A stretch of DNA of 64,000 nucleotides, taken from positions 1 through 64,000 of the IMG/VR virus record IMGVR_UViG_3300044633_000899, one strand, 5' to 3'. Positions 3-50,831 of this stretch are shown here, one piece after another. The notes beneath the pieces were generated by a model that searched no databases, was not told the DNA's origin, and worked only from the letters and a program-made list of their open reading frames with translations. Each line of letters opens with the position of its first letter. Within the stretch, counting starts at the first letter, position 1. Position numbers and translations under genes: made by a program.

Positions 3-1739
3 ATTGGTCAAACCCCAGAAGAGTTAAATTACCAATACTATAGAAATCTAATATTAAATTCGGCTTACTTATTCAAGTCAAAAGGAACCCGTAAATCTAT
101 TGAAATATTATTACGATTAATTGGTGCACCAGAAATGTTAGTTGAATTTAATGAATACATTTATATTGCTGACCAAAAGATAAATTTAAATGATTTTGAA
201 AAACAATATCAGTTAATAACTGGTGGTACCTATAACCAAGAATTACCGGTGTTAGATACCACTGATATCTTCTCAATTATGGGAACACAATATACAGGGT
301 TTACAACACAAACAATATCACAAAATGTTGATACCGTATTAGAAGATTACCCAATTGATGATCTTGGTTATCCAGCAATGCCCCAACAAAGTGATTCGTT
401 TTTCTATCAAATCGGTGGTGGTTGGTTTGAGTCAACACCGCAGCACAGAATGCCCGAAAAGGTAGATGTAACAAATAGTGTATTTACTGGTGAGAATCCA
501 ACATTCCAAACGACATTACTACCTTTTAATTATGGTGAACAGTACCTACAAAGATACCGACAATTTCCATATATGAATTTAGGTTTTAGGTTAAGAAAGG
601 TTATTGACAATAAAAAAAGTTGGACAGACGAAGAAGACACTTTAAGAAGAAGTTTTGATGGGAATTTTAATGCGTATTATGAGGTTGGTGATGAAAATTT
701 AACAATTAACGTTAAAAACGTTGACATACATATGAATCCAGCACAAGGTTTGGTTTATGACGTGTATACAATGTCCAGAGCGTATAATTACCCAATACCA
801 AACGAGGGTTTGAATTATGTTAAACCAACATATTGTGATCCGACACCAAATAGTCAATACCCAAAAAGAGGTGGGATTGACTGGACAGAAATAAATCCTA
901 AACCAAAACAAAAGACGTTTTTTGAATTTGCACAAACATTTTGGCGAAATATGATAAACGTTAGAAATAGACAATACATAACAGATGGTAAAACTGGGGG
1001 TTACCCAACTTTACAATCAATATATTGGAAATATTTAGAATCAGATTCGGCGATTAATATACCAAACGACAATTTCACGTATCAAACAATGATTAATTAC
1101 GTGCATGGCCTTGGTGATTATTGGATTCGGTTAATTGAACAAATGGTTCCAGCAACAACAATATGGAATACGGGTGTTAAGTATGAGAACTCAATTTTCC
1201 ACAGACAAAAATTTGTTTGGAGAAGACAATCTGGTTGTCAGATTATCCCAGTACCGTGTAAACCGTGTTCATTAGTCAGTCAACTATTTGTGTATGATTG
1301 TCCAATCCAAGCCGTAGATTGTTCATTATATCCTTGGGGTTCTGACCCAACAGTTAATTCATTTGGTGTTGTTTTAAGTTCGGTGGTTAATAAGTATTTA
1401 TTAAATAATGGTTATGACCCAACAAATGATTGTGTTTTAAATTCAATTGAATCAACTTGGTATTTGGATGTTAGTGTTAACGGTGATACATTAGTATCAC
1501 AAGAATTTTTCACTGGTTTTGGATACACATTAAGTGGTACTAGTTACCCAACAACAATTGAATGGCTTAACGCAGTAAACAACATAAATTCTGAACTACA
1601 AATTTTTGGTTTGAGTGTTATAATTAACGATGTTGATGAAACAATAACGGTATATAATAATAATTGTATACCACTAAGTACTCAAAATCAATTTGAATTT
1701 AATGTGGGTATAAACTTTGATATAACGTGTAATAATTAA
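3..1739 (+). CDS. Baseplate wedge-like structural protein (5' partial)
   Basis: The frame is open from the window start. It includes YLFKSKGTRKSIEILL, the KGT motif typical of baseplate wedge proteins, and lies in a structural gene cluster. Confidence 0.6.
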   Translation: MGQTPEELNYQYYRNLILNSAYLFKSKGTRKSIEILLRLIGAPEMLVEFNEYIYIADQKINLNDFEKQYQLITGGTYNQELPVLDTTDIFSIMGTQYTGFTTQTISQNVDTVLEDYPIDDLGYPAMPQQSDSFFYQIGGGWFESTPQHRMPEKVDVTNSVFTGENPTFQTTLLPFNYGEQYLQRYRQFPYMNLGFRLRKVIDNKKSWTDEEDTLRRSFDGNFNAYYEVGDENLTINVKNVDIHMNPAQGLVYDVYTMSRAYNYPIPNEGLNYVKPTYCDPTPNSQYPKRGGIDWTEINPKPKQKTFFEFAQTFWRNMINVRNRQYITDGKTGGYPTLQSIYWKYLESDSAINIPNDNFTYQTMINYVHGLGDYWIRLIEQMVPATTIWNTGVKYENSIFHRQKFVWRRQSGCQIIPVPCKPCSLVSQLFVYDCPIQAVDCSLYPWGSDPTVNSFGVVLSSVVNKYLLNNGYDPTNDCVLNSIESTWYLDVSVNGDTLVSQEFFTGFGYTLSGTSYPTTIEWLNAVNNINSELQIFGLSVIINDVDETITVYNNNCIPLSTQNQFEFNVGINFDITCNN

Positions 1740-4105
1740 TGTCAATAATAATAAATAACTATTCGGTAACTGGCGACTGCTCAAACCTTGGTGTTGGTGC
1801 TGTGTATTTTAATATAACTGGAGATAGTCCAACTTGGGCTGTTAGCGAAATAACAACAAGTGGTTTATTACCAACATCGGCATCAACGACAGATTATTAT
1901 GTGGATAATTTACCACCTGGTAATTACTTTGTTGAAATCATTGATTCTGGGATACCCACACAAGAAACCATAATATTACCAGTTTATATATCATCGGGAA
2001 CTTGTGTTTCAATAGAGACTGAAGGTACAAATTGTGGTATTACCAATGGATCTATAACAGCAACAACGGCAAACGTTTACGGACCAATTGATTTTTATTT
2101 ATTTGACATTAATGATAATTTAGTTAATTTAGCAATTGGTGTAACAAATGACTACGTGTTTAATAGTTTATCTGCCGACACATATTATGTTGTTGCAGAT
2201 GATGGTGGTGGTTGTACTGGTAGATCAGAATCTTGTATAATATACACCTCAACATCAATAACATACGGACTATACGTTGTAAACGACGCCAATTGTGTTT
2301 CAACGGCGGGAAGTGGTAAGATATTTGTAACAGGTTTAACAGGTAACCCACCATTCACGTATCTTTGGTCTAATGGTGAATTAACAAATCAAATTGAAAA
2401 TTTAATACCTGGAGCATACTCTGTAACAGTAACAGATAGTTTAGGTTGTTCACTAATACAAACCGCAATCGTTAATAATGTAAATCCAGTAACTTTTGGG
2501 TCATTTATAACAACACCACCAACTTGTTTTAGTAATGATGGTGAGATTGACGTGATTATAGTTGATGGTACAGCACCATATTATTATAGTGGTAGTAATG
2601 GTGATACAGTTATAACATATTCTCAAAATTACACATTTACTGGATTAAGTTCGGGTGGCTTCACCGTGTTTGTACAAGACGCTGGACTATGTAGTTTTAC
2701 ACAATCAACAACATTAATAACACCTAATAGTTTTTCTGTTGTAAGTGTCAACACAACTAACTCAAACTGTGGTAATAACGGACAGGTTGATGTTATAATA
2801 AATAGTGGTGGGGGTTTAGGTAGTTTTACATATTCGTTAACAAACTCAAGTGGTAATACGATATCTGATACAACACCATCAATAACATATTCATTCCCAA
2901 ACCTAAGTTCGGATACTTACACATTAACAATAACTGATGGTACTTGTACATATACGACAACCGTAACGATTAATAACGTAATATTATTCGGAATAAGTAC
3001 CTCAATAACAGGTACAACTTGTGGTTTAAATAACGGATCCGTACAAATTACCGCAACAACTGGGGGTACGTTACCATATACATACTCAATAAATGGGTTA
3101 ACACCATCTCAACAAACAATATTTAACAATTTAACATCAGGAAATTACATTGCAACGGTAACTGATTTTAATGGTTGTTCACAAACACAGAATTTTAGTA
3201 TTTCAGCATCAACAGGTGTGTTTTTTGATTTATCAACAACACAACCGATAACGGGTAATGATGGGGAAATTGATGTTTTATTATATAATGGTGAACCACC
3301 ATTTACCTACAATTGGAGTACAAATGTTGGATCACAAACAGGATTAGTTGTTACTGGATTAACAGCCGGAACATACACACTAGAGGTCATTGATGATAAT
3401 GGTTGTGCATACACTAAAAGTACCATATTAAACGGTACTAATAGAGTCTCAACGTACCAAAAATACACTATTTGTGATACTCAATTTGAAAACACTGATA
3501 TTATTGGTAAACGAGGCATCCAACAAATGTACAACGAAGGTTTTTATGATTTAACATTAGATGATGTTAATTGTGTTGTAAATTCAGCAAAATTTACTGC
3601 AGTCCTAAATGTTAACGATGTTGTAAAAAACATTGAATTTTACACATCAAATGGTTTAACAGATTTCCCAAGTGATGTTTTATGGGTTGAAACAATTGTT
3701 AATAACTTAAAAACTTTTGACGGTATAGGTGACGTTATTGTGGACTATACAACAAACACAATACAGATTTTCAACGCGTGTGATATTGTTGGTAGTACTT
3801 GTAACCCACAAATTATTAACACATTATCCGATGTGAAAGTGATTATCAATTTATTGATTGATTATGATATTTCTTGTGTGTCGTGTGATGGACCAACAAC
3901 CACAACAACAACAACCTGTTTATTTAATGAGTTTGAAATACAACTTGGTAGTCCTTGTACTTTTTACTTATATGATTGTGATGGAAGTATATTTGATACG
4001 ATTAGTTTTGTTAGTGGTGGAACATATACTATTTGTGCCGCGAGTTACGGACATGATATATGTGCTGTTAGTTTACCAATAATTCTTGGTCCTTGTAACC
4101 CATAA
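1739..4105 (+). CDS. Large beta-rich virion fibre/adhesin-like protein with SprB-like repeats
   Basis: Repeated GxIxVxxxGGxPPYTYxW and LxxGxYxVxVxDxxGC units. Ser/Thr/Gly/Cys rich, with a poly-Thr near the C-terminus. Confidence 0.65.
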   Translation: MSIIINNYSVTGDCSNLGVGAVYFNITGDSPTWAVSEITTSGLLPTSASTTDYYVDNLPPGNYFVEIIDSGIPTQETIILPVYISSGTCVSIETEGTNCGITNGSITATTANVYGPIDFYLFDINDNLVNLAIGVTNDYVFNSLSADTYYVVADDGGGCTGRSESCIIYTSTSITYGLYVVNDANCVSTAGSGKIFVTGLTGNPPFTYLWSNGELTNQIENLIPGAYSVTVTDSLGCSLIQTAIVNNVNPVTFGSFITTPPTCFSNDGEIDVIIVDGTAPYYYSGSNGDTVITYSQNYTFTGLSSGGFTVFVQDAGLCSFTQSTTLITPNSFSVVSVNTTNSNCGNNGQVDVIINSGGGLGSFTYSLTNSSGNTISDTTPSITYSFPNLSSDTYTLTITDGTCTYTTTVTINNVILFGISTSITGTTCGLNNGSVQITATTGGTLPYTYSINGLTPSQQTIFNNLTSGNYIATVTDFNGCSQTQNFSISASTGVFFDLSTTQPITGNDGEIDVLLYNGEPPFTYNWSTNVGSQTGLVVTGLTAGTYTLEVIDDNGCAYTKSTILNGTNRVSTYQKYTICDTQFENTDIIGKRGIQQMYNEGFYDLTLDDVNCVVNSAKFTAVLNVNDVVKNIEFYTSNGLTDFPSDVLWVETIVNNLKTFDGIGDVIVDYTTNTIQIFNACDIVGSTCNPQIINTLSDVKVIINLLIDYDISCVSCDGPTTTTTTTCLFNEFEIQLGSPCTFYLYDCDGSIFDTISFVSGGTYTICAASYGHDICAVSLPIILGPCNP

Positions 4106-7012: not shown

Positions 7013-8695
7013 ATGGCCGAAGAAATATTTAGTTGTGATCAATGTCTTAACGTATCTTTTATAATTACCGCCATTGATTTTGTAAAACCTGTTGATTTAC
7101 AGATGTCTTACGATGGGATTAATGGTTTCTATAGTGGTGAAACACTTGGTGATATATATACTATTTATAACGACAATGGTGTTTGGATTATTGAAGATGA
7201 ACTTGTTATTTTAGCAACTGGTTCTACTTGTGATTGTCCATACAATTGTAATTGGGTTACAAATCCTAATTTAGATGTAACAATTAATGACCTTACAGTG
7301 GTTTCGTGTACACAAACTACAACAACCACATTTTATCCGTTTACAACCACCACAACAACACTACAACCAACACCAATCCAACCAACAAATGAATGTGACG
7401 TTATCACGATATTCCCAATGAATGTTATTTGTGAATCAACAAACCCAACATTTACAAACACGTTTGACGGTATTGCGACAATCTTAATTACTGGTGGGAC
7501 ACCACCTTATGAGATTTTATGGGATAATGGTGGTGTTGGTCCTTTTGTTACAAATTTAGGTGTTGGTGAATACGTTGCAACGATTAGTGATTATTATAAC
7601 GATTTTATAATTACAAGTACTTGTGTTTTAACAGCACAAACACCTGCGACAACAACTACAACATCAACAACTACATTACCTCAGTTTGGTAATCTTTGTT
7701 TTATTGTTTCTGGATATTTTGGTAGACTATATCAAACGCAATACATTAGTTTTGATTTTGATGGTTATATTAACGACAAACCTAGTTGGTTATCTGACGA
7801 TGGAGAATATTTCTTATATTGGAATACTGGTACAACATCACAATGGACTGTTTCTGGTTATACAGGTGGTGCAATTTTTAACCAAAACCCAAGTGTACCA
7901 CCAATTACTGGGTGGCAACATTTAGGTAAACAAAGTTTAGAAATTAATGTTTATGAAGGTGATTGTGTTTTTATCAACCCAATAACATTCCAGATTGGAA
8001 AAAATAACGCAACATGTATTAATGACGGATCCATTATTATTAATGCGAGTGGTGGAATACCACCATATGAATATTCATTAAATGGTGGGACTAATTTCGT
8101 AACAACACCAATAATAAATAACTTATCACCTGGTTCATACATTGTTTTAGTTAAGGATTCATTAAATAATATCTCAACAACACAAAACGTATTAATATCA
8201 CAAAATGTGACAAATACTGTGTATACATTAACATTAAATAAAGTTGGAAACAATATTACCATTGTGGTATCACCAACATTACCTATTGGAACATCAATAT
8301 CATTTGACGTTGTATATGAAAGTGTGTTTACTGTGGCACCATCACCAACTTCAGCTAGTTTTAATGGAAATTTAAATTTATTATTAAATGGTAGTCCAAT
8401 TATATCAAATTCACCAATAATAACGAATACAACAACATTTAATCCGTGTAATAATGGTAGTCTTTATACAACCAACAATAAACTAATTTGGACAAATGTT
8501 GTAATGGTAAATACATCAACACTTACAGGTTCTTTAACCGGTCAAATAACACCAAATACACCTTTACCATCTTGTTATTCTGCAAACAAAAGCAATTCCG
8601 TAACACTAAATAATGTAACAATAAGTGGTTGTCAGTGTTGTTCGGTTGTAATTACACAATTAGTGGTAGAAACAATATCACAAGGGTTTAATTAA
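7013..8695 (+). CDS. Thr-rich virion protein with SprB-like repeats
   Basis: GGTPPYEILW and GGIPPYEYSLNG units, plus several poly-Thr tracts. Confidence 0.6.
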   Translation: MAEEIFSCDQCLNVSFIITAIDFVKPVDLQMSYDGINGFYSGETLGDIYTIYNDNGVWIIEDELVILATGSTCDCPYNCNWVTNPNLDVTINDLTVVSCTQTTTTTFYPFTTTTTTLQPTPIQPTNECDVITIFPMNVICESTNPTFTNTFDGIATILITGGTPPYEILWDNGGVGPFVTNLGVGEYVATISDYYNDFIITSTCVLTAQTPATTTTTSTTTLPQFGNLCFIVSGYFGRLYQTQYISFDFDGYINDKPSWLSDDGEYFLYWNTGTTSQWTVSGYTGGAIFNQNPSVPPITGWQHLGKQSLEINVYEGDCVFINPITFQIGKNNATCINDGSIIINASGGIPPYEYSLNGGTNFVTTPIINNLSPGSYIVLVKDSLNNISTTQNVLISQNVTNTVYTLTLNKVGNNITIVVSPTLPIGTSISFDVVYESVFTVAPSPTSASFNGNLNLLLNGSPIISNSPIITNTTTFNPCNNGSLYTTNNKLIWTNVVMVNTSTLTGSLTGQITPNTPLPSCYSANKSNSVTLNNVTISGCQCCSVVITQLVVETISQGFN

Positions 8696-19654: not shown

Positions 19655-22024
19655 ATGGATCTATTTAATCCACCAAAATTATACAATTACAACATTATGA
19701 TTAAAGATATTGACTTCTCAAAATTTGAAAATCCTACAATACAAGTTGTTTGGGAGGATTTGTCAGAGAATTTCACACAAGATAAGATAAAAAGTGTTAA
19801 ACATTATTTCCAAAAGAAATATAATACGACAAATGTAAATGTCTTAACAAAAGCCAAGATTGTTGATCAAGAAACAAATCAAACAATTGATATTTCGGTA
19901 AACATTACCGACACAAATTATCAATTGGATTTATTGAAGAATTTTATTACATCAAAGGGTTATGATAAAAAGATGGACGAAATCTTGGATTTAAATAAAT
20001 CTGTTGAGGGCAGAATGGATAATATTGACACATCACAATTCAAACAGTGGTATATTAGAAATATTGAATTTTCAAACTTTTTATCGTATGGTGAGAATCA
20101 AAAACTGGACATTGATAAGTTAAATGGTATCGTTGTTGTTGAATCAGACCCAAAAAATTTCGGTGGAAAAACTGTTTTAAGCCTGGACCTATTATTGTTT
20201 TTATTCTTTAATGAGACAACCAAAACAACAAAGGCCGAGGAGATTTTTAACCGATTTACCGATAAAGACAAAGTCTCGGTTAAGGGTGAAATCACGATTG
20301 ATGGTGAGGACTATATAATTGTACGAACGATTGAACGAAAAAAATCAAAGAAAGGTGAATGGAATGTAAAAACCGAATTGGACTTTTTCAAAAAGTTGGG
20401 TGATGGATCGTTACAAAACTTTACTGGGGAACAAAGACGAGAGACTGAAGATTTTATTAAGAACTCAATTGGAACAAAGGAAGACTTCTTAATGACAATT
20501 CTAACAACCGCAACAAACTTGGAGGACTTGTTGGAATCAAAACCAACAGCAAGAGGTCAAATTTTGTCACGATTTATGGGACTAGAATTTCTTAAAAGAA
20601 AGGAAGAGGTGGCTAAAGAAATTTATTCCGAATTTAACAAGTCAAAATTATCAAACATTTATAATTCTGAACAATTAAAAAATGATATTGAGACTTATAG
20701 ACAAGAAATAAGTGACCTTAATGATAAAATCATCACATACGATGTTGAACTAAAAACAATTGAAGAAGGTATCACCAAGGGTAAACAATATCGCGATGAT
20801 ATGTTAAACAAAAAACATAGTGACATTGACCGTGAGATTGCGATTATGAATCCAGATGAGGTTAAAAACCAAATCCAAAAGTTAACAACCGAAAAAAGTT
20901 CATTCCAGACAAAGTTAAACGAATTAAATGTTGTTGAACCAGAAACATTTTACCACGAGGACGAACACGACAATGTTAAAGATGAGTACAACAAGGTTAA
21001 TACGGAAAAAATAACACTTGATACAAAAATATCTGAAATTGAGAAATTAAAAAGTTCTGTTAAAGGTGGTATTAAATGTGAACACTGTGGAATTGAGTTA
21101 ATGAACGCTGCGATTACCCAACAAAAAATTTCAGAACTTGACGGATTTATCAATCAAAGAGATGAAAAAATTAGGTTAATGACTGATTTATCACTCAAAG
21201 AAAAAGAATTTGTTGAAACTAAAAAACAGTTTGATGAGTATGAAAAAAACAAACTAATCAAAGAAAAATACGATTTAAGTATTGAAAGTTGTGATTTAAA
21301 AATTGCTGGTTTAAATACAAAACTAGAAAAGTGGGAAGAAGTCCAGGATAAAATCCAAGGTAACAAAAAGATTGATGAGATGTTACTTAAAGCGGATATG
21401 CGTTTGGAAGAACTGGAAAGAACGAAAAGGGCGAAAACAACTGAAATTTCAACCGCTGAGTACAACATTAAATCCAAGAACGAAAAAATCGTACACAACG
21501 AAAGTATGATTGTCAAAATCAATGAAGAAGAACAAAAAGACAGTATCTACAAAATGTACTTGGAGGCCTTCGGTAAAAACGGACTATCTAAAAGTATTAT
21601 GAAAACAATGATGCCGTTGATTAATTCTGAGTTACAACGATTAATGGAAGATAGTGCATACTTCAAATTAGAGGTTAGAATTAACGATAAAAACGAAGTT
21701 GAGTTCATTATGGTTGATAATAGTACTGGTGTTGAGAAATTAATGATTAGTGGGTCTGGTTATGAGAAAACAATTGCGTCATTAGCATTACGATCGGTAT
21801 TAAGTAAAGTATGTTCACTACCAAAGCCCAACATTGTTGTGTTTGACGAGGTTTTTGGAAAGATTGCGAATGACAATTTAGAGTTGGTTGCCGAATTTTT
21901 CACAAAGATTAAAACGTATTTTGATAAGATCTTTGTTATCAGTCACAATCCATTAATTAACCAATGGGCAGATTCAACGATTAGAGTTACCAAGGAAGAC
22001 AATGTTTCACGAATTTTATCTTAA
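19655..22024 (+). CDS. Rad50/SbcC/gp46-like SMC ATPase
   Basis: FSNFLSYG, Walker A NFGGKT, a CEHC zinc hook, SGSGYEK signature and VVFDEVFG Walker B. Confidence 0.9.
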   Translation: MDLFNPPKLYNYNIMIKDIDFSKFENPTIQVVWEDLSENFTQDKIKSVKHYFQKKYNTTNVNVLTKAKIVDQETNQTIDISVNITDTNYQLDLLKNFITSKGYDKKMDEILDLNKSVEGRMDNIDTSQFKQWYIRNIEFSNFLSYGENQKLDIDKLNGIVVVESDPKNFGGKTVLSLDLLLFLFFNETTKTTKAEEIFNRFTDKDKVSVKGEITIDGEDYIIVRTIERKKSKKGEWNVKTELDFFKKLGDGSLQNFTGEQRRETEDFIKNSIGTKEDFLMTILTTATNLEDLLESKPTARGQILSRFMGLEFLKRKEEVAKEIYSEFNKSKLSNIYNSEQLKNDIETYRQEISDLNDKIITYDVELKTIEEGITKGKQYRDDMLNKKHSDIDREIAIMNPDEVKNQIQKLTTEKSSFQTKLNELNVVEPETFYHEDEHDNVKDEYNKVNTEKITLDTKISEIEKLKSSVKGGIKCEHCGIELMNAAITQQKISELDGFINQRDEKIRLMTDLSLKEKEFVETKKQFDEYEKNKLIKEKYDLSIESCDLKIAGLNTKLEKWEEVQDKIQGNKKIDEMLLKADMRLEELERTKRAKTTEISTAEYNIKSKNEKIVHNESMIVKINEEEQKDSIYKMYLEAFGKNGLSKSIMKTMMPLINSELQRLMEDSAYFKLEVRINDKNEVEFIMVDNSTGVEKLMISGSGYEKTIASLALRSVLSKVCSLPKPNIVVFDEVFGKIANDNLELVAEFFTKIKTYFDKIFVISHNPLINQWADSTIRVTKEDNVSRILS

Positions 22025-30374: not shown

Positions 30375-30785
30375 ATGAAAAACACACTTATTCTTTTTTT
30401 TATATTATTAACCAATATTTCTTTTGGTCAAATAATTGAATCTGACACAACAACACTATTAATACCAGTTAATGTTGGAAAATCTATTTTGGTTGACTTG
30501 AATGATTTAGAGCGATTGAAAAAACAAGAAGTGACGTATAAAAATGAAATACAACAACTAGAAAACAAAGTATTTAAAAACGAAAAGATAATAACTAGTT
30601 TAGAGGATAAGGATAAAAAAAACAATGAGATAATTGAATTAAAGGATTCAAAGTATAAATTAGTTGACGAGGAAAACAAACAATTACGTGATGATATTAA
30701 AAAAATCAAAACTAAGAATGTAATTATTGAAATTGTTGGTGGATCAATTATAGCCGCATTAACTTATATTATAACCTTTAAATGA
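30375..30785 (+). CDS. Secreted coiled-coil protein with a C-terminal TM helix
   Basis: Signal peptide (…TNISFG/Q), coiled coil and a C-terminal hydrophobic helix. Confidence 0.55.
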   Translation: MKNTLILFFILLTNISFGQIIESDTTTLLIPVNVGKSILVDLNDLERLKKQEVTYKNEIQQLENKVFKNEKIITSLEDKDKKNNEIIELKDSKYKLVDEENKQLRDDIKKIKTKNVIIEIVGGSIIAALTYIITFK

Positions 30786-31879
30786 TGGAAGACACTATTA
30801 AACAAGATATAACACAAATGGTTAACAGTTTAACGGCAGGAAATAATGACGCCAGAGTTGCTGCAAACAAATCCTTGAATGAAGATGGTAATGAAAGAAA
30901 TCCTGAAGACTATTTAGTTGAACCCAACGATATGGTTATTATTTTAAATCTAGTTAAAAATAAAAAACTATCTGCGAATAAAATAAAACAAAAAATTAGA
31001 GAGTATCTTAAAGATCCTAACACACTAAAAAGTTTCTTAAAATCAATAATTGACAGTAGAGGTAAAAAAGAAACAAAAGAAATGACTGGTACATCTTCAG
31101 CTGGGGGATATTCAGAACCGTTATTCACGAAAATGGAAACAAAAGAAGCGACAGGTTCATCCTCATCTGGTTCATATGAAACACCAAAGATATGGGCTAA
31201 AAGTACGAATAAAAAAGACTGGAGAGGTAAATCAAAACCACAAATACCTGGTGGTAAGTTTGTTCAGGTTAAGAAAAAATGTAAAAAGTTTCCATATTGT
31301 AATCAAGGTGATATTAACGCCCTTAATATTTTTGAAGATAAAATGTTGATAAATGCGGTAAATAAGGTTTCGCAAAAATTTGGTATAAATAAAGATATAA
31401 TCAAAGAAATAATTGAAGTTGAGATTAGTAATACAACAACCGAAAATCAATACAAACTAATTAAAGAAAATATTTCTTTAAAAGAAAAATTAAGGAACCT
31501 AATCAAAAAGATTGGTTTTGAATCTGTAACAAAGATTGTTGGATCTTTGGATAAAACTTTTGAAATCTTTGATATTAAAGAACCGATGGATTTCTTAAAC
31601 TTGTTTAACGATCTGGATGTTGTTCAGAGTGAAGACCTTGACTCTTGGACGTTATATCGTTATAAAAAAGGTCATAATTTTATTGTTTACGATAGAGAAA
31701 GTGATGAGATTTATATTAATTATTATGAAATTTGGTCGGTTTTGGAAGACAAATTTGGTCTTAAATACTCTGAAATACAGGAACTTACAAAGATATGGTT
31801 GGATGAGGTCTACAATTTAAGGGGTGTCACATCATTGATAATTGGTGTTGATGACAGTTGTATGAGGTCTACAATTTAA
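30782..31879 (+). CDS. Hypothetical protein C-terminally fused to the array-associated module (WLDEVYNLRGVT domain)
   Basis: Residues from about nt 31478 onward align with ORF 49880-50302. The stop codon lies inside repeat 2 of the array. Confidence 0.75.
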   Translation: MMEDTIKQDITQMVNSLTAGNNDARVAANKSLNEDGNERNPEDYLVEPNDMVIILNLVKNKKLSANKIKQKIREYLKDPNTLKSFLKSIIDSRGKKETKEMTGTSSAGGYSEPLFTKMETKEATGSSSSGSYETPKIWAKSTNKKDWRGKSKPQIPGGKFVQVKKKCKKFPYCNQGDINALNIFEDKMLINAVNKVSQKFGINKDIIKEIIEVEISNTTTENQYKLIKENISLKEKLRNLIKKIGFESVTKIVGSLDKTFEIFDIKEPMDFLNLFNDLDVVQSEDLDSWTLYRYKKGHNFIVYDRESDEIYINYYEIWSVLEDKFGLKYSEIQELTKIWLDEVYNLRGVTSLIIGVDDSCMRSTI

Positions 31880-31961
31880 GGGGAGTCACACCCTTTCATA
31901 TAACTTATGCAATTGACTTAGAGTAGTTGGATGAGGTCTACAATTTAAGATAGTTCATACT
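31798..31961 (+). CRISPR. CRISPR-like mini-array 1 (three 36-nt repeats, two unique spacers of 23 and 33 nt)
   Basis: Repeats at 31798, 31857 and 31926 (consensus GTTGGATGAGGTCTACAATTTAAGGGGAGTCACACC), with the distal copy degenerate. The repeats are certain, the CRISPR function is not. Confidence 0.5.
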
Positions 31962-49879: not shown

Positions 49880-50302
49880 ATGGAAGACAAAATAAAAGAA
49901 AAATTAAAGGATTTAATCAAAAATGTTGGATTTAAATCAACGATAAGAGTTGTCGGATCCTTGGATAAAACATTTGAGATCTTTGATATTAAAGAACCAA
50001 TGGATTTCTTAAATTTATTTAATGATTTGGAATCGGTTCAGAGTGAAGAACGTGAAGATTGGACGTTATATCGTTATAAAAAAGGACATAATTTTATAAT
50101 TTACAATAGAAAAAATGATTATGTTCATATCAATTATGATGAAATTTGGTCAGTTTTAGAAGACAATTTTGGACTTAACTACTCTGAAACACAAGAACTT
50201 ACACAGAGATGGTTGGATGAGGTCTACAATTTAAGGGGAGTCACACCATATATTCAACTTTTTGAAAATCAGCAATATAGTTGGATGAGGTCTACAATTT
50301 AA
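49880..50302 (+). CDS. Stand-alone array-associated protein (WLDEVYNLRGVT domain)
   Basis: Paralog of the C-terminal module of 30782-31879. Its 3' end comprises repeat 1, spacer 1 and part of repeat 2. Confidence 0.8.
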   Translation: MEDKIKEKLKDLIKNVGFKSTIRVVGSLDKTFEIFDIKEPMDFLNLFNDLESVQSEEREDWTLYRYKKGHNFIIYNRKNDYVHINYDEIWSVLEDNFGLNYSETQELTQRWLDEVYNLRGVTPYIQLFENQQYSWMRSTI

Positions 50303-50365
50303 GGGGAGTCATACCAACACCCCCTTCCAACTTTTAGTAAACATTGGATGATATCAACAATTTAA
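50212..50365 (+). CRISPR. CRISPR-like mini-array 2 (two full 36-nt repeats, one degenerate partial repeat, spacers of 32 and 27 nt)
   Basis: Repeats at 50212 and 50280, and a degenerate ATTGGATGATATCAACAATTTAA at 50343. Same repeat as array 1 but different spacers. Confidence 0.5.
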
Positions 50366-50378
50366 TATATTTATTTTT

Positions 50379-50831
50379 ATGAAGATCATAATAACCGAAG
50401 AACAATATAACCTACTACAAGATATTGATGATGGGTTAATAACCTACTCAAGTATATTTAAACCTAAGATTAAGATTTTAGTTATATTTAAAAATAATGA
50501 AAATTACGAAAATCTTATAACGATATTCAATGAGTATGGTTATGGTTTTTATGTACCAAACCAAGAATTAATAATTATTAATGGTGAAATATTTTTAAAT
50601 TCTAACGATTTAACAATGGACGATTTAAGGTTTATTGAGGCTCACGAAATTAGTCACTTACTTTTAAATCACGATGGACCAAGATCCGAGAAAGACGAAA
50701 TGGATGCCGACATAGGTGCGTACATATTATTAACAAGACATAATATTTCAACAGAACGATTAGTGGATGAATTTGAATTTAGACATAATGTTAAATTTGA
50801 TGAAAAACTAACTAAAAATTTTGATATTTAA
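50379..50831 (+). CDS. HExxH metallopeptidase-like protein (IrrE/ImmA-like)
   Basis: AHEISHLLL...E..AD motif. MKIIITEEQ N-terminus after TATTTAT (50368-50374). Confidence 0.6.
   Translation: MKIIITEEQYNLLQDIDDGLITYSSIFKPKIKILVIFKNNENYENLITIFNEYGYGFYVPNQELIIINGEIFLNSNDLTMDDLRFIEAHEISHLLLNHDGPRSEKDEMDADIGAYILLTRHNISTERLVDEFEFRHNVKFDEKLTKNFDI

Follow-up and report, generated by a model that had tools for sequence, protein, structure and literature searches.

Repeat-spacer arrays with type VI-B-like repeats at the coding ends of a phage gene family

The DNA analysed here, a stretch of 64,000 nucleotides (nt) referred to below as the window, represents positions 1-64000 of the 296,330-nt virus contig IMGVR_UViG_3300044633_000899 (JGI Ga0453724_0000003). 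It contains two loci at which an array of direct repeats and spacers, resembling the CRISPR arrays of bacteria, begins inside the 3' end of a protein-coding gene (Table 1). The genes of both loci encode a conserved module, the two copies being paralogs with 75% identity, and the last 12 codons of each module constitute repeat 1 (WLDEVYNLRGVT); the canonical 36-nt repeat is GTTGGATGAGGTCTACAATTTAAGGGGAGTCACACC. At locus 1, the open reading frame (ORF) 30782-31879 ends in ...WLDEVYNLRGVT, followed by spacer 1, which is read as SLIIGVDDS, and by a TAA stop codon within repeat 2. The 20-mer core of the repeat was present in the window in five copies at ≤3 mismatches vs. 0.01 copies expected. An initial annotation of the window had described the array at the coding end of this ORF, with its three repeats, its spacers of 23 and 33 nt, and the read-through into spacer 1, and all of these features were confirmed. 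It had also pointed to a second copy at 49.9 kb. The same architecture with different spacers does recur, but it is the gene that starts there (49.88 kb), and the array itself is located at 50.2 kb.

Table 1. Coordinates of the genes, repeats, and spacers at the two array loci of the window.
Feature	Position	Strand	Remarks
Locus 1, ORF containing the module, 365 amino acids (aa)	30782..31879	+	Stop codon inside repeat 2
Locus 1, conserved module (C-terminal ~125 aa of ORF 30782-31879)	about 31457-31833	+
Locus 1, repeat 1, 36 nt	31798..31833	+	In frame, final 12 module codons, (W)LDEVYNLRGVT
Locus 1, spacer 1, 23 nt (atypically short)	31834..31856	+	Translated as protein tail
Locus 1, repeat 2	31857..31892	+	Single mismatch, G to T at repeat position 5
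Locus 1, spacer 2, 33 nt	31893..31925	+
Locus 1, terminal degenerate repeat (repeat 3)	31926..31961	+	Conserved in first 24 nt only
Locus 2, stand-alone module gene, 140 aa with tail	49880..50302	+	Paralog of the locus 1 module
Locus 2, repeat 1, canonical sequence	50212..50247	+	In frame at gene 3' end
Locus 2, spacer 1, 32 nt	50248..50279	+	Confined to this phage and one near-identical contig
Locus 2, repeat 2	50280..50315	+
Locus 2, spacer 2, 27 nt, oldest	50316..50342	+	Common to the 4-spacer array of L044
Locus 2, terminal degenerate repeat	50343..50378	+	Abuts ATG of next gene (50379)

As a further correction to the initial annotation, locus 1 is a partly decayed array, with a short spacer of 23 nt and a mutated repeat 2. 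Spacer 1 of locus 1 was also present in the orthologous array of L081 (L numbers designate fetched loci), and no second occurrence of spacer 2 was found in IMG/VR by exact scanning. Comparison with Rfam matched neither CRISPR-DR nor any other family and gave only C/D small nucleolar RNA noise at E>1. An anti-repeat similar to a trans-activating CRISPR RNA was rejected at the level of ≤3 mismatches, at which the reverse strand of the window had no copy of the core; more diverged anti-repeats were not searched. Elsewhere in ORF 30782-31879, a 66-nt tandem duplication (window 31064-31177, 77% identical), unrelated to the array, encodes two Ser/Gly-rich segments, KETKEMTGTSS... and METKEATGSSS...

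The exact 20-mer of the repeat was found at 46 loci in IMG/VR, in arrays of up to six copies. The 296-kb contig carries at least ten units, near 31.8, 50.2, 77.4, 79.4, 167, 239.8-242.3 (four in tandem), and 284 kb. For array statistics, the window and the fetched loci were pooled (137 arrays, 88 unique spacers). The length of spacers was 29-32 nt in 80 of the 88, with a mode of 31, and repeat-spacer units were 65-69 nt long without preference for multiples of three. Across arrays the terminal repeat was degenerate, with its 5' 24 nt kept. The arrays share with CRISPR arrays the near-identical direct repeats, in the range of 23-55 nt, with unique spacers of similar length, as well as spacer turnover at one end and a degenerate repeat at the opposite end.

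At the locus upstream of the M78-peptidase-like gene, near-identical strains (L001, L005, L025, L043, L044, and the window) had wholly different spacers. In five of the six informative array pairs, the shared block of spacers was distal and the differences were gene-proximal. L008 differed from L046 only in spacer 1 of 5, locus 2 of the window had the final spacer alone in common with the 4-spacer array of L044, and the lone spacer of the L019 type corresponded to the sixth and last spacer of L237. Repeat variants formed blocks when counted from the gene end, as would be expected with copying of the first repeat at each insertion. These pairs support the proposal of the initial annotation that the arrays grow at their gene-proximal end, where the gene takes the position of a leader; spacers vary between strains in a polar manner, and they are unique and not degenerate duplicates of adjacent sequence. 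Replication slippage or unequal recombination between paralogs, which would multiply gene ends in tandem without spacer capture, could account for the head-to-tail order of the copies, and the paralogs do recombine, as the distal array of L021 matches the array of L011. However, the spacers are related neither to one another nor to the flanks, fall within a narrow length range, and are wholly different between near-identical strains in which the repeats are nearly perfect. Distal sharing, gene-proximal differences, and blocks of repeat variants are together the reason why slippage or simple duplication does not explain the arrays, and we regard this origin as extremely improbable.

Array size reached 5-6 spacers in several actively changing lineages. 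Loci L019, L022, L024, L033, and L038 contained one identical spacer, encoding the acidic tail TDEVDEEDDELVG, and their metagenomic relative L237 contained five newer spacers ahead of the TDEVDEEDDELVG-encoding spacer. Frozen and active arrays (L019 type and L237, respectively) thus occur side by side within one subfamily.

The start of nearly every array lies in frame within the 3' end of a gene encoding about 125-140 aa. Retrieval by protein homology, independent of the repeat, yielded 78 loci, and a repeat-spacer unit was present in most of them. Among 31 inspected members (39-75% identical), 17 passed a strict repeat filter, and in most of the others a repeat, a spacer of ~30 nt, and a degenerate second copy were discernible by eye. 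Downstream repeats, for which the initial annotation had suggested examining the homologs, are nearly always present in them. The family is large, with 392 close relatives, and clustering at 50% identity gave 734 clusters; none of its members is annotated. It is encoded by no deposited phage genome, and the module had no match in Pfam, PHROGs, or PADLOC. The AlphaFold model of the module (predicted local distance difference test score 94.7) contained four helices, a four-stranded sheet, and two C-terminal helices, with the WLDEVYNL motif placed in the predicted final helix. Fold searching did not produce a match at E≤0.001 in either PDB or BFVD, and the sole result of a PDB profile search was TcpK at E=0.066. 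Domain fusions in longer members of the family gave no clue to its role. Homology between the module and the C-terminus of Cas13b was tried and rejected (hhalign probability 0.07). The protein is mildly acidic, with a mean isoelectric point (pI) of 5.4, and has several conserved polar residues.

Distant members of the family retain a diverged W-L-x-E-x-Y-N-L ending; therefore, the helix is ancestral, and the repeat was derived from the gene end and not the reverse. L049, L050, L102, and L103 had subfamily-specific repeat variants matching their own gene ends. The codons of the in-gene repeat are rare for the genome yet fixed (GAG 27/27, AGG 27/27, GTC, TAC), and synonymous variation was 0.26 bits in the in-gene repeat vs. 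0.51 bits in the rest of the gene. This pattern points either to constraint at the nucleotide level or to homogenisation among many copies.

Most module genes start with MKIIITENQY, the same N-terminus as that of the M78/IrrE-like metallopeptidase gene downstream of locus 2 (50379-50831), which starts with MKIIITEEQY. The MKIIITE N-terminus was found in one other window gene only. We take it to resemble the T4-type capsid-targeting or prohead-protease (I/L-x-E) motif and leave it as a lead. In L252, a copy of the module is flanked by the portal gene on one side and the gene of the Peptidase_S77 prohead protease on the other.

The gene frame was free of stop codons in 67 of the 88 unique spacers; for each of the five remaining frames, the number of open spacers was 47-50. 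The mean for shuffled spacers was 44±4.6, and none of 2000 shuffles reached 67. In-frame stops numbered 0, 0, 0, 1, 0, and 1 in spacer codons 1-6 and 6, 7, and 6 in codons 7-9, while in the other frames stops occurred already from the first spacer codons. The depletion concerned the stop codons themselves and not T at the first codon position. Since the repeat has stops in both alternative frames (VG-stop and WMRSTI-stop), translation always ends by the next repeat. The spacer-encoded tail of the protein is, judging from this distribution of stops, under selection. In the simplest reading, captured fragments would be frame-random, and those truncating the protein within ~6 residues of ...RGVT(P) would be eliminated; the sole apparent requirement on the tail seems to be a minimum length.

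The scarcity of stops in the first six spacer codons, the excess of open spacers, and the termination of each tail by the next repeat would also be expected if the variable C-terminal peptide from the newest spacer were the selected product and the downstream units were discarded tails. Conserved residues, however, are absent from the tails, and the spacers lack codon periodicity, for which a chi-square test was not significant. The amino-acid composition of the tails looks as AT-rich DNA would give, with no control compared. Minimum length alone seems required, no recombinational switching of cassettes was seen, and the source of the VI-B-like repeat (see below) and of the insertion machinery would be left without explanation. 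We therefore consider diversification of tails improbable. Of the related suggestion in the initial annotation, that C-terminal peptides are swapped by recombination between repeats, what stands is that spacer 1 is kept open for ~6 codons; neither a sign of recombinational swapping nor codon periodicity was seen. TIGR-Tas arrays, diversity-generating retroelements, shufflons, and integron cassettes were set aside, as their unit size, repeat symmetry, or mutation pattern does not fit.

The spacers had a guanine-plus-cytosine (GC) content of 35% vs. 30% for the phage (P~1e-6) and did not show the A-over-T skew typical of the phage coding strand. None of the 12 spacers of the 296-kb contig had a match longer than 16 nt within 55.7% of that contig, and such an absence of self matches has P=5.8e-5 if spacers are drawn randomly from the carrier genome. 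The spacers are of non-self origin. The third spacer of L044 matched window positions 19913-19932 exactly over 20 nt, within the SbcC/Rad50-like ORF 19655-22024; beyond these 20 nt it diverges from the ORF while preserving the reading frame, and what it actually targets is probably a diverged homolog of the ORF. A spacer of L017 had an 18-nt match to a hexapeptide-transferase-like ORF in L103. Both partial matches lie in genes of related phages and on the sense strand. Exact scans with spacers returned the arrays themselves or nothing.

Flavobacterium columnare and F. branchiophilum have 36-nt repeats with 29-30-nt spacers (PMC5395568, Table 4), and both carry type VI-B loci (PMC6452259). The phage repeat was identical to these repeats at 21-23 of 36 positions (permutation P<1e-4), compared with 11-14 of 36 for the II-C-type repeat and another repeat (Cas12a-like by our own reading) of the same genomes. 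By this measure, the phage repeat belongs to the type VI-B (Cas13b) repeat sequence family. A pattern built from the positions shared by phage and VI-B repeats was used to scan metagenomes and gave at least 120 loci. Among the matches listed, two groups of repeats were distinguished, phage-type (31-36/36) and host-type (26/36 or less), with none between. The phage-type matches listed were short arrays on AT-rich contigs with no ORF ≥700 aa in the fetched stretch; the host-type matches listed were long arrays. At 35 of 36 host loci, a same-strand ORF ≥900 aa preceded the array, with its end 60-420 nt upstream of the first matched repeat, and degenerate copies were mainly at the far end. The ORF beside the host-type array of L185 is a confirmed Cas13b (NCBIfam equivalog, E=1.8e-241). 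Array orientation was settled empirically on these host arrays; quasi-palindromic repeats had left the polarity in PMC8092290 ambiguous. The phage loci share the host layout, with the small phage gene, 125 aa and unrelated to Cas13b, in the place of cas13b.

A leader-repeat hairpin of the host VI-B type was not found at the phage loci, and the phage repeat is predicted to lack the strong central hairpin recognised by Cas13b. The host control L198:3538-3633 had a strong predicted leader-repeat hairpin (z=-5.3), consistent with the published mechanism blocking the formation of extraneous CRISPR RNA (crRNA). Directly upstream of VI-B-type arrays, L198:2-3502 and L222:1342-4785 are ORFs of ~1150 aa without an NCBIfam Cas13b match. 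They are 19-22% identical to the confirmed Cas13b of L185 and may be divergent Cas13b-like effectors.

No recognisable cas gene was detected in the examined parts of the phage genome. The window contained 22 Pfam families at E≤1e-6, all of them non-Cas; no Cas family was among the first 25 families listed by PADLOC and NCBIfam, and none was found when the largest window ORFs were scanned singly. The absence of visible cas genes from the 64 kb, noted in the initial annotation, is in agreement with these searches. Gene tables with Pfam for 67-107 kb and 157-186 kb of the contig included no Cas family, nor did a syntenic contig standing for the ~10 kb upstream of 156.7 kb. The regions 236.8-251.5 and 271.2-287 kb were covered for ORFs ≥450 aa only, with no Cas among them; in all, the screen reached ~165 kb, or all but ~44%, of the 296-kb contig. 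In relatives L001-L047, no Cas was found among array-flanking ORFs ≥450 aa. The large ORFs beside their arrays represent the T4-type core (intein-containing portal, gp23, tail sheath, baseplate J, ribonucleotide reductase, and SNF2 helicase), and the others, very large at 1772 and 1861 aa, have no annotation. When IMG/VR was searched with an alignment of Cas13b, no relative was obtained within the limited sensitivity of the tool.

The large unannotated ORFs beside the arrays, and a genome of which part was screened coarsely or was beyond the screen, leave room for an integrase and/or an RNA-guided effector encoded by the phage itself, possibly acting with the module protein and independently of host Cas proteins. 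Such autonomy would suit the presence of at least ten arrays per genome, each tied to one protein family spanning 734 clusters, the co-divergence of subfamily repeats with their own gene ends, the failure to find a host with the same repeat, and a confidently predicted fold that has several conserved polar residues and no known relative. However, no Cas or integrase family was found in ~165 kb of the genome (part of it for large ORFs only) or in the L001-L047 ORFs ≥450 aa, and a mildly acidic module (pI about 5.4) is atypical of a nucleic-acid-binding protein. Co-divergence of repeats and gene ends would be automatic if new repeats copy the in-gene repeat, and the resemblance to VI-B repeats would have no explanation. 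We judge an autonomous system to be rather unlikely. We see about the same limited chance for a self-contained phage system, linked in evolution to VI-B arrays and relying on an integrase and/or effector not recognised as Cas, in which fragments of ~30 nt would be inserted at the gene 3' end, each serving as a potential guide and a new tail. The narrower proposal of the initial annotation, a new RNA-guided system in which the small protein binds or processes repeat-spacer RNAs, was neither supported nor contradicted; the module is mildly acidic and without a detectable relative of known function.

The arrays might also be neutral or mildly harmful scars. The gene end would mimic a host repeat, host Cas1-Cas2 would insert spacers there ectopically, non-truncating insertions would be tolerated, and recombination would homogenise the repeats. 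Scars would account for the absent cas genes, the non-self spacers, and the missing RNA structure, and the purging of early stops would be plain purifying selection. Many distant members with a single old spacer and a decayed second repeat fit well with this origin, as do the ancestral W-L-x-E-x-Y-N-L helix and the derivation of the repeat from the gene. But synonymous changes could abolish a harmful site, yet rare codons are fixed across diverged paralogs. The unit is kept in almost the whole family, with active turnover in several lineages and up to 5-6 spacers. Indiscriminate capture should also give common self spacers, and none were seen. We consider scars unlikely.

The reading we favour, tentatively and with somewhat less than even confidence, is that these are genuine CRISPR-type arrays of VI-B ancestry, which are actively turning over and are fed by an integrase acting in trans. 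Spacers of ~30 nt from non-self DNA would be inserted at the gene-proximal repeat by a Cas1-Cas2-type integrase. Its source would most likely be the host, because host VI-B arrays themselves borrow II-C Cas1-Cas2; in F. columnare, VI-B arrays acquire spacers in trans via II-C Cas1 despite different leaders and repeats (PMC8092290). Each insertion would duplicate the in-gene repeat and push older spacers away from the gene, and any insertion introducing a stop in the first six or so codons past the gene end would be purged. The array would be transcribed as a 3' extension of the gene's messenger RNA (mRNA), and its DNA or RNA would engage the host CRISPR machinery. We infer the inserter of spacers, the RNA binder, and the benefit to the phage from these patterns and from comparison with known systems.

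As to that benefit, we favour by analogy titration or decoy of the adaptation complex or Cas13b over use of the spacers as guides. In one version, the arrays would be an integration sink diverting the adaptation complex; in the other, their RNAs would titrate Cas13b, as extraneous crRNA does: RNA of the first repeat with its upstream sequence sequesters Cas13b and weakens defence (PMC13187072). The lack of a hairpin speaks against titration by RNA. By the same kind of analogy, the spacers may serve as guides that act on competing phages, as in viral mini-arrays; no effector and no full targets were found for this use, and with Cas13b as effector it would trigger collateral RNase activity. Among the suggestions of the initial annotation, a mini-array that co-opts or decoys a host CRISPR effector fits best, with respect to the VI-B repeat family, but neither an identical host repeat nor a hairpin was found.

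Several observations count against the arrays being VI-B-derived and supplied by a host. No bacterial array in 185,579 species genomes contained the exact 20-mer, and the closest host repeat among the matches listed was identical at 26 of 36 positions. The VI-B match was equally good in reverse orientation, because VI-B repeats are quasi-palindromic. Predicted hairpins of the phage repeat reached -2.1 to -5.7 vs. -10.9 and -12.2 kcal/mol for host repeats, the gene end together with the repeat had no significant predicted RNA structure (z=+0.4 and +0.8), and variants at repeat positions 5-6 seemed by eye, without a formal covariation count, to lack compensating changes; on these grounds, it is doubtful whether Cas13b binds the repeat. 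If the array is co-read with the gene, RNAs from the two partly matching spacers, both in sense orientation, would fail to pair with mRNA. Exact scans of five spacers (four against IMG/VR, one against metagenomes) and a search of two arrays against 50,697 deposited phages revealed no full-length protospacer. With annotated tables for ~50% of the genome and two further stretches covered for ORFs ≥450 aa only, a gene of cas1 or cas2 size could have escaped. Finally, the repeat unit is tied to one protein family even at 39-55% identity, and this tie, together with the selection on spacer translation, hints at a protein-linked function beyond the favoured model. Every model, including the one we favour, leaves some observation unexplained.

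The 20-mer matched bacterial genomes twice, once in a phage fragment binned in a Flavobacterium metagenome-assembled genome (MAG) and once by chance in a housekeeping gene. The latter match (L048:4327-4346) is located in a Pseudomonadota MAG, in a gene for an RluA-type pseudouridine synthase by reading of the translation alone; a chance match of this kind is expected about once in 596 Gb.

Compared with known systems, the arrays resemble viral mini-arrays in being virus-borne, without cas genes, and with few non-self spacers, some of which, given the two partial matches, may come from relatives of the carrier. Viral mini-arrays are cas-less, occur on virus genomes in inter-virus conflict, and have repeats identical to those of the host (PMC11656645); they are non-coding, with 1-2 spacers and clear targets. 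In contrast, the first repeat here coincides with the final 12 codons of a conserved gene, a genome carries at least ten arrays with up to six spacers, and no full-length target was found. The failure to find an identical host repeat is a further difference from the mini-arrays, and one that counts, like the points above, against the favoured reading. With type VI-B arrays, the phage arrays share the 36-nt repeat, the ~30-nt spacers, the GTTG...CA(A/C)C termini, and the TTxAAGGG core. They also share a gene upstream on the same strand, a distal degenerate repeat, and the lack of their own adaptation genes. Unlike type VI-B loci, they have the gene of a 125-aa phage protein upstream instead of cas13b, and neither an intergenic leader, nor a leader-repeat hairpin, nor a central repeat hairpin. 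Ectopic integration of a spacer by Cas1-Cas2 at a repeat-like site, with duplication of this site, can create an array outside a CRISPR locus, a 'neo-CRISPR'. The phage site differs in being conserved across a large old gene family, multi-copy, and conserved at the nucleotide level. In the guide RNAs of TnpB and IscB, the scaffold overlaps the 3' coding end of the gene itself, and the variable guide follows directly. This is an analogy only, as the phage protein is far too small and unrelated, with no nuclease domain and no transposon ends.

The RNA anti-CRISPRs (Racr), the Cracr arrays, and the 'extraneous crRNA' of Cas13b are alike in that phage-borne repeat copies could titrate Cas proteins. 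Solitary repeat units have been reported for every CRISPR type except VI, by a search tool which first masks ORFs (PMC10651486), and gene-embedded repeats would therefore have been hidden. By the definition used there, Racr are solitary, non-coding, and ≥90% identical to a host repeat, whereas the phage repeats form arrays, have a coding first repeat, are ~60% identical to known repeats, and have spacers that turn over. A recent study of jumbo phages from freshwater did not report any CRISPR array (PMC13573597), and our literature search found no description of gene-fused phage arrays. Viral mini-arrays and repeat mimics are already known; what appears to be new is the kinship with VI-B, the double role of the first repeat as the C-terminal helix of a conserved protein family, the number of arrays per genome, and the constraint that translation places on spacers.

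The carrier, a freshwater jumbo phage, is by its sequence distantly T4-like. At the level of the capsid protein, it shares ~41-47% identity with uncultured huge phages, a Microcystis phage, and Flavobacterium phage vB_FspM_immuto. Almost all window genes are on the + strand, and the cumulative GC skew climbs steadily. Two large proteins (window 1739-4105 and 7013-8695) contain SprB repeats, one of them with a C-terminal sorting domain of the type IX secretion system; they carry Bacteroidota-type surface modules and are probably tail-fibre proteins. SprB repeats and the sorting domain hint at a Bacteroidota host, which is probably Flavobacterium-like. Among the 95 gene calls of the window are three C-5 cytosine DNA methyltransferases, and an RpoD-like sigma factor, DnaJ, thioredoxin/glutaredoxin, an Smr domain, and a 'Swiss Army Knife' RNA-repair HAD domain are also encoded. 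The portal gene of this phage group contains an intein (L037:1980-5081, L252:6162-9257). A small ORF with a faint HNH match (L254:20500-20889), on the opposite strand in a gene-poor stretch near 106 kb, may be a free-standing homing endonuclease.

As far as the literature checked shows, these would be the first VI-B-like arrays reported on phages. With at least ten look-alike, integration-competent sites per genome, the phage would offer a natural substrate for studying how a trans-acting integrase recognises its sites in VI-B systems without cas1. The arrays also allow a test of whether phages divert adaptation or the loading of Cas13b. A repeat that is at the same time a C-terminal helix, followed by spacers whose translation is under selection, represents dual coding and bears on the ways in which arrays may originate from gene ends or become fused to them.

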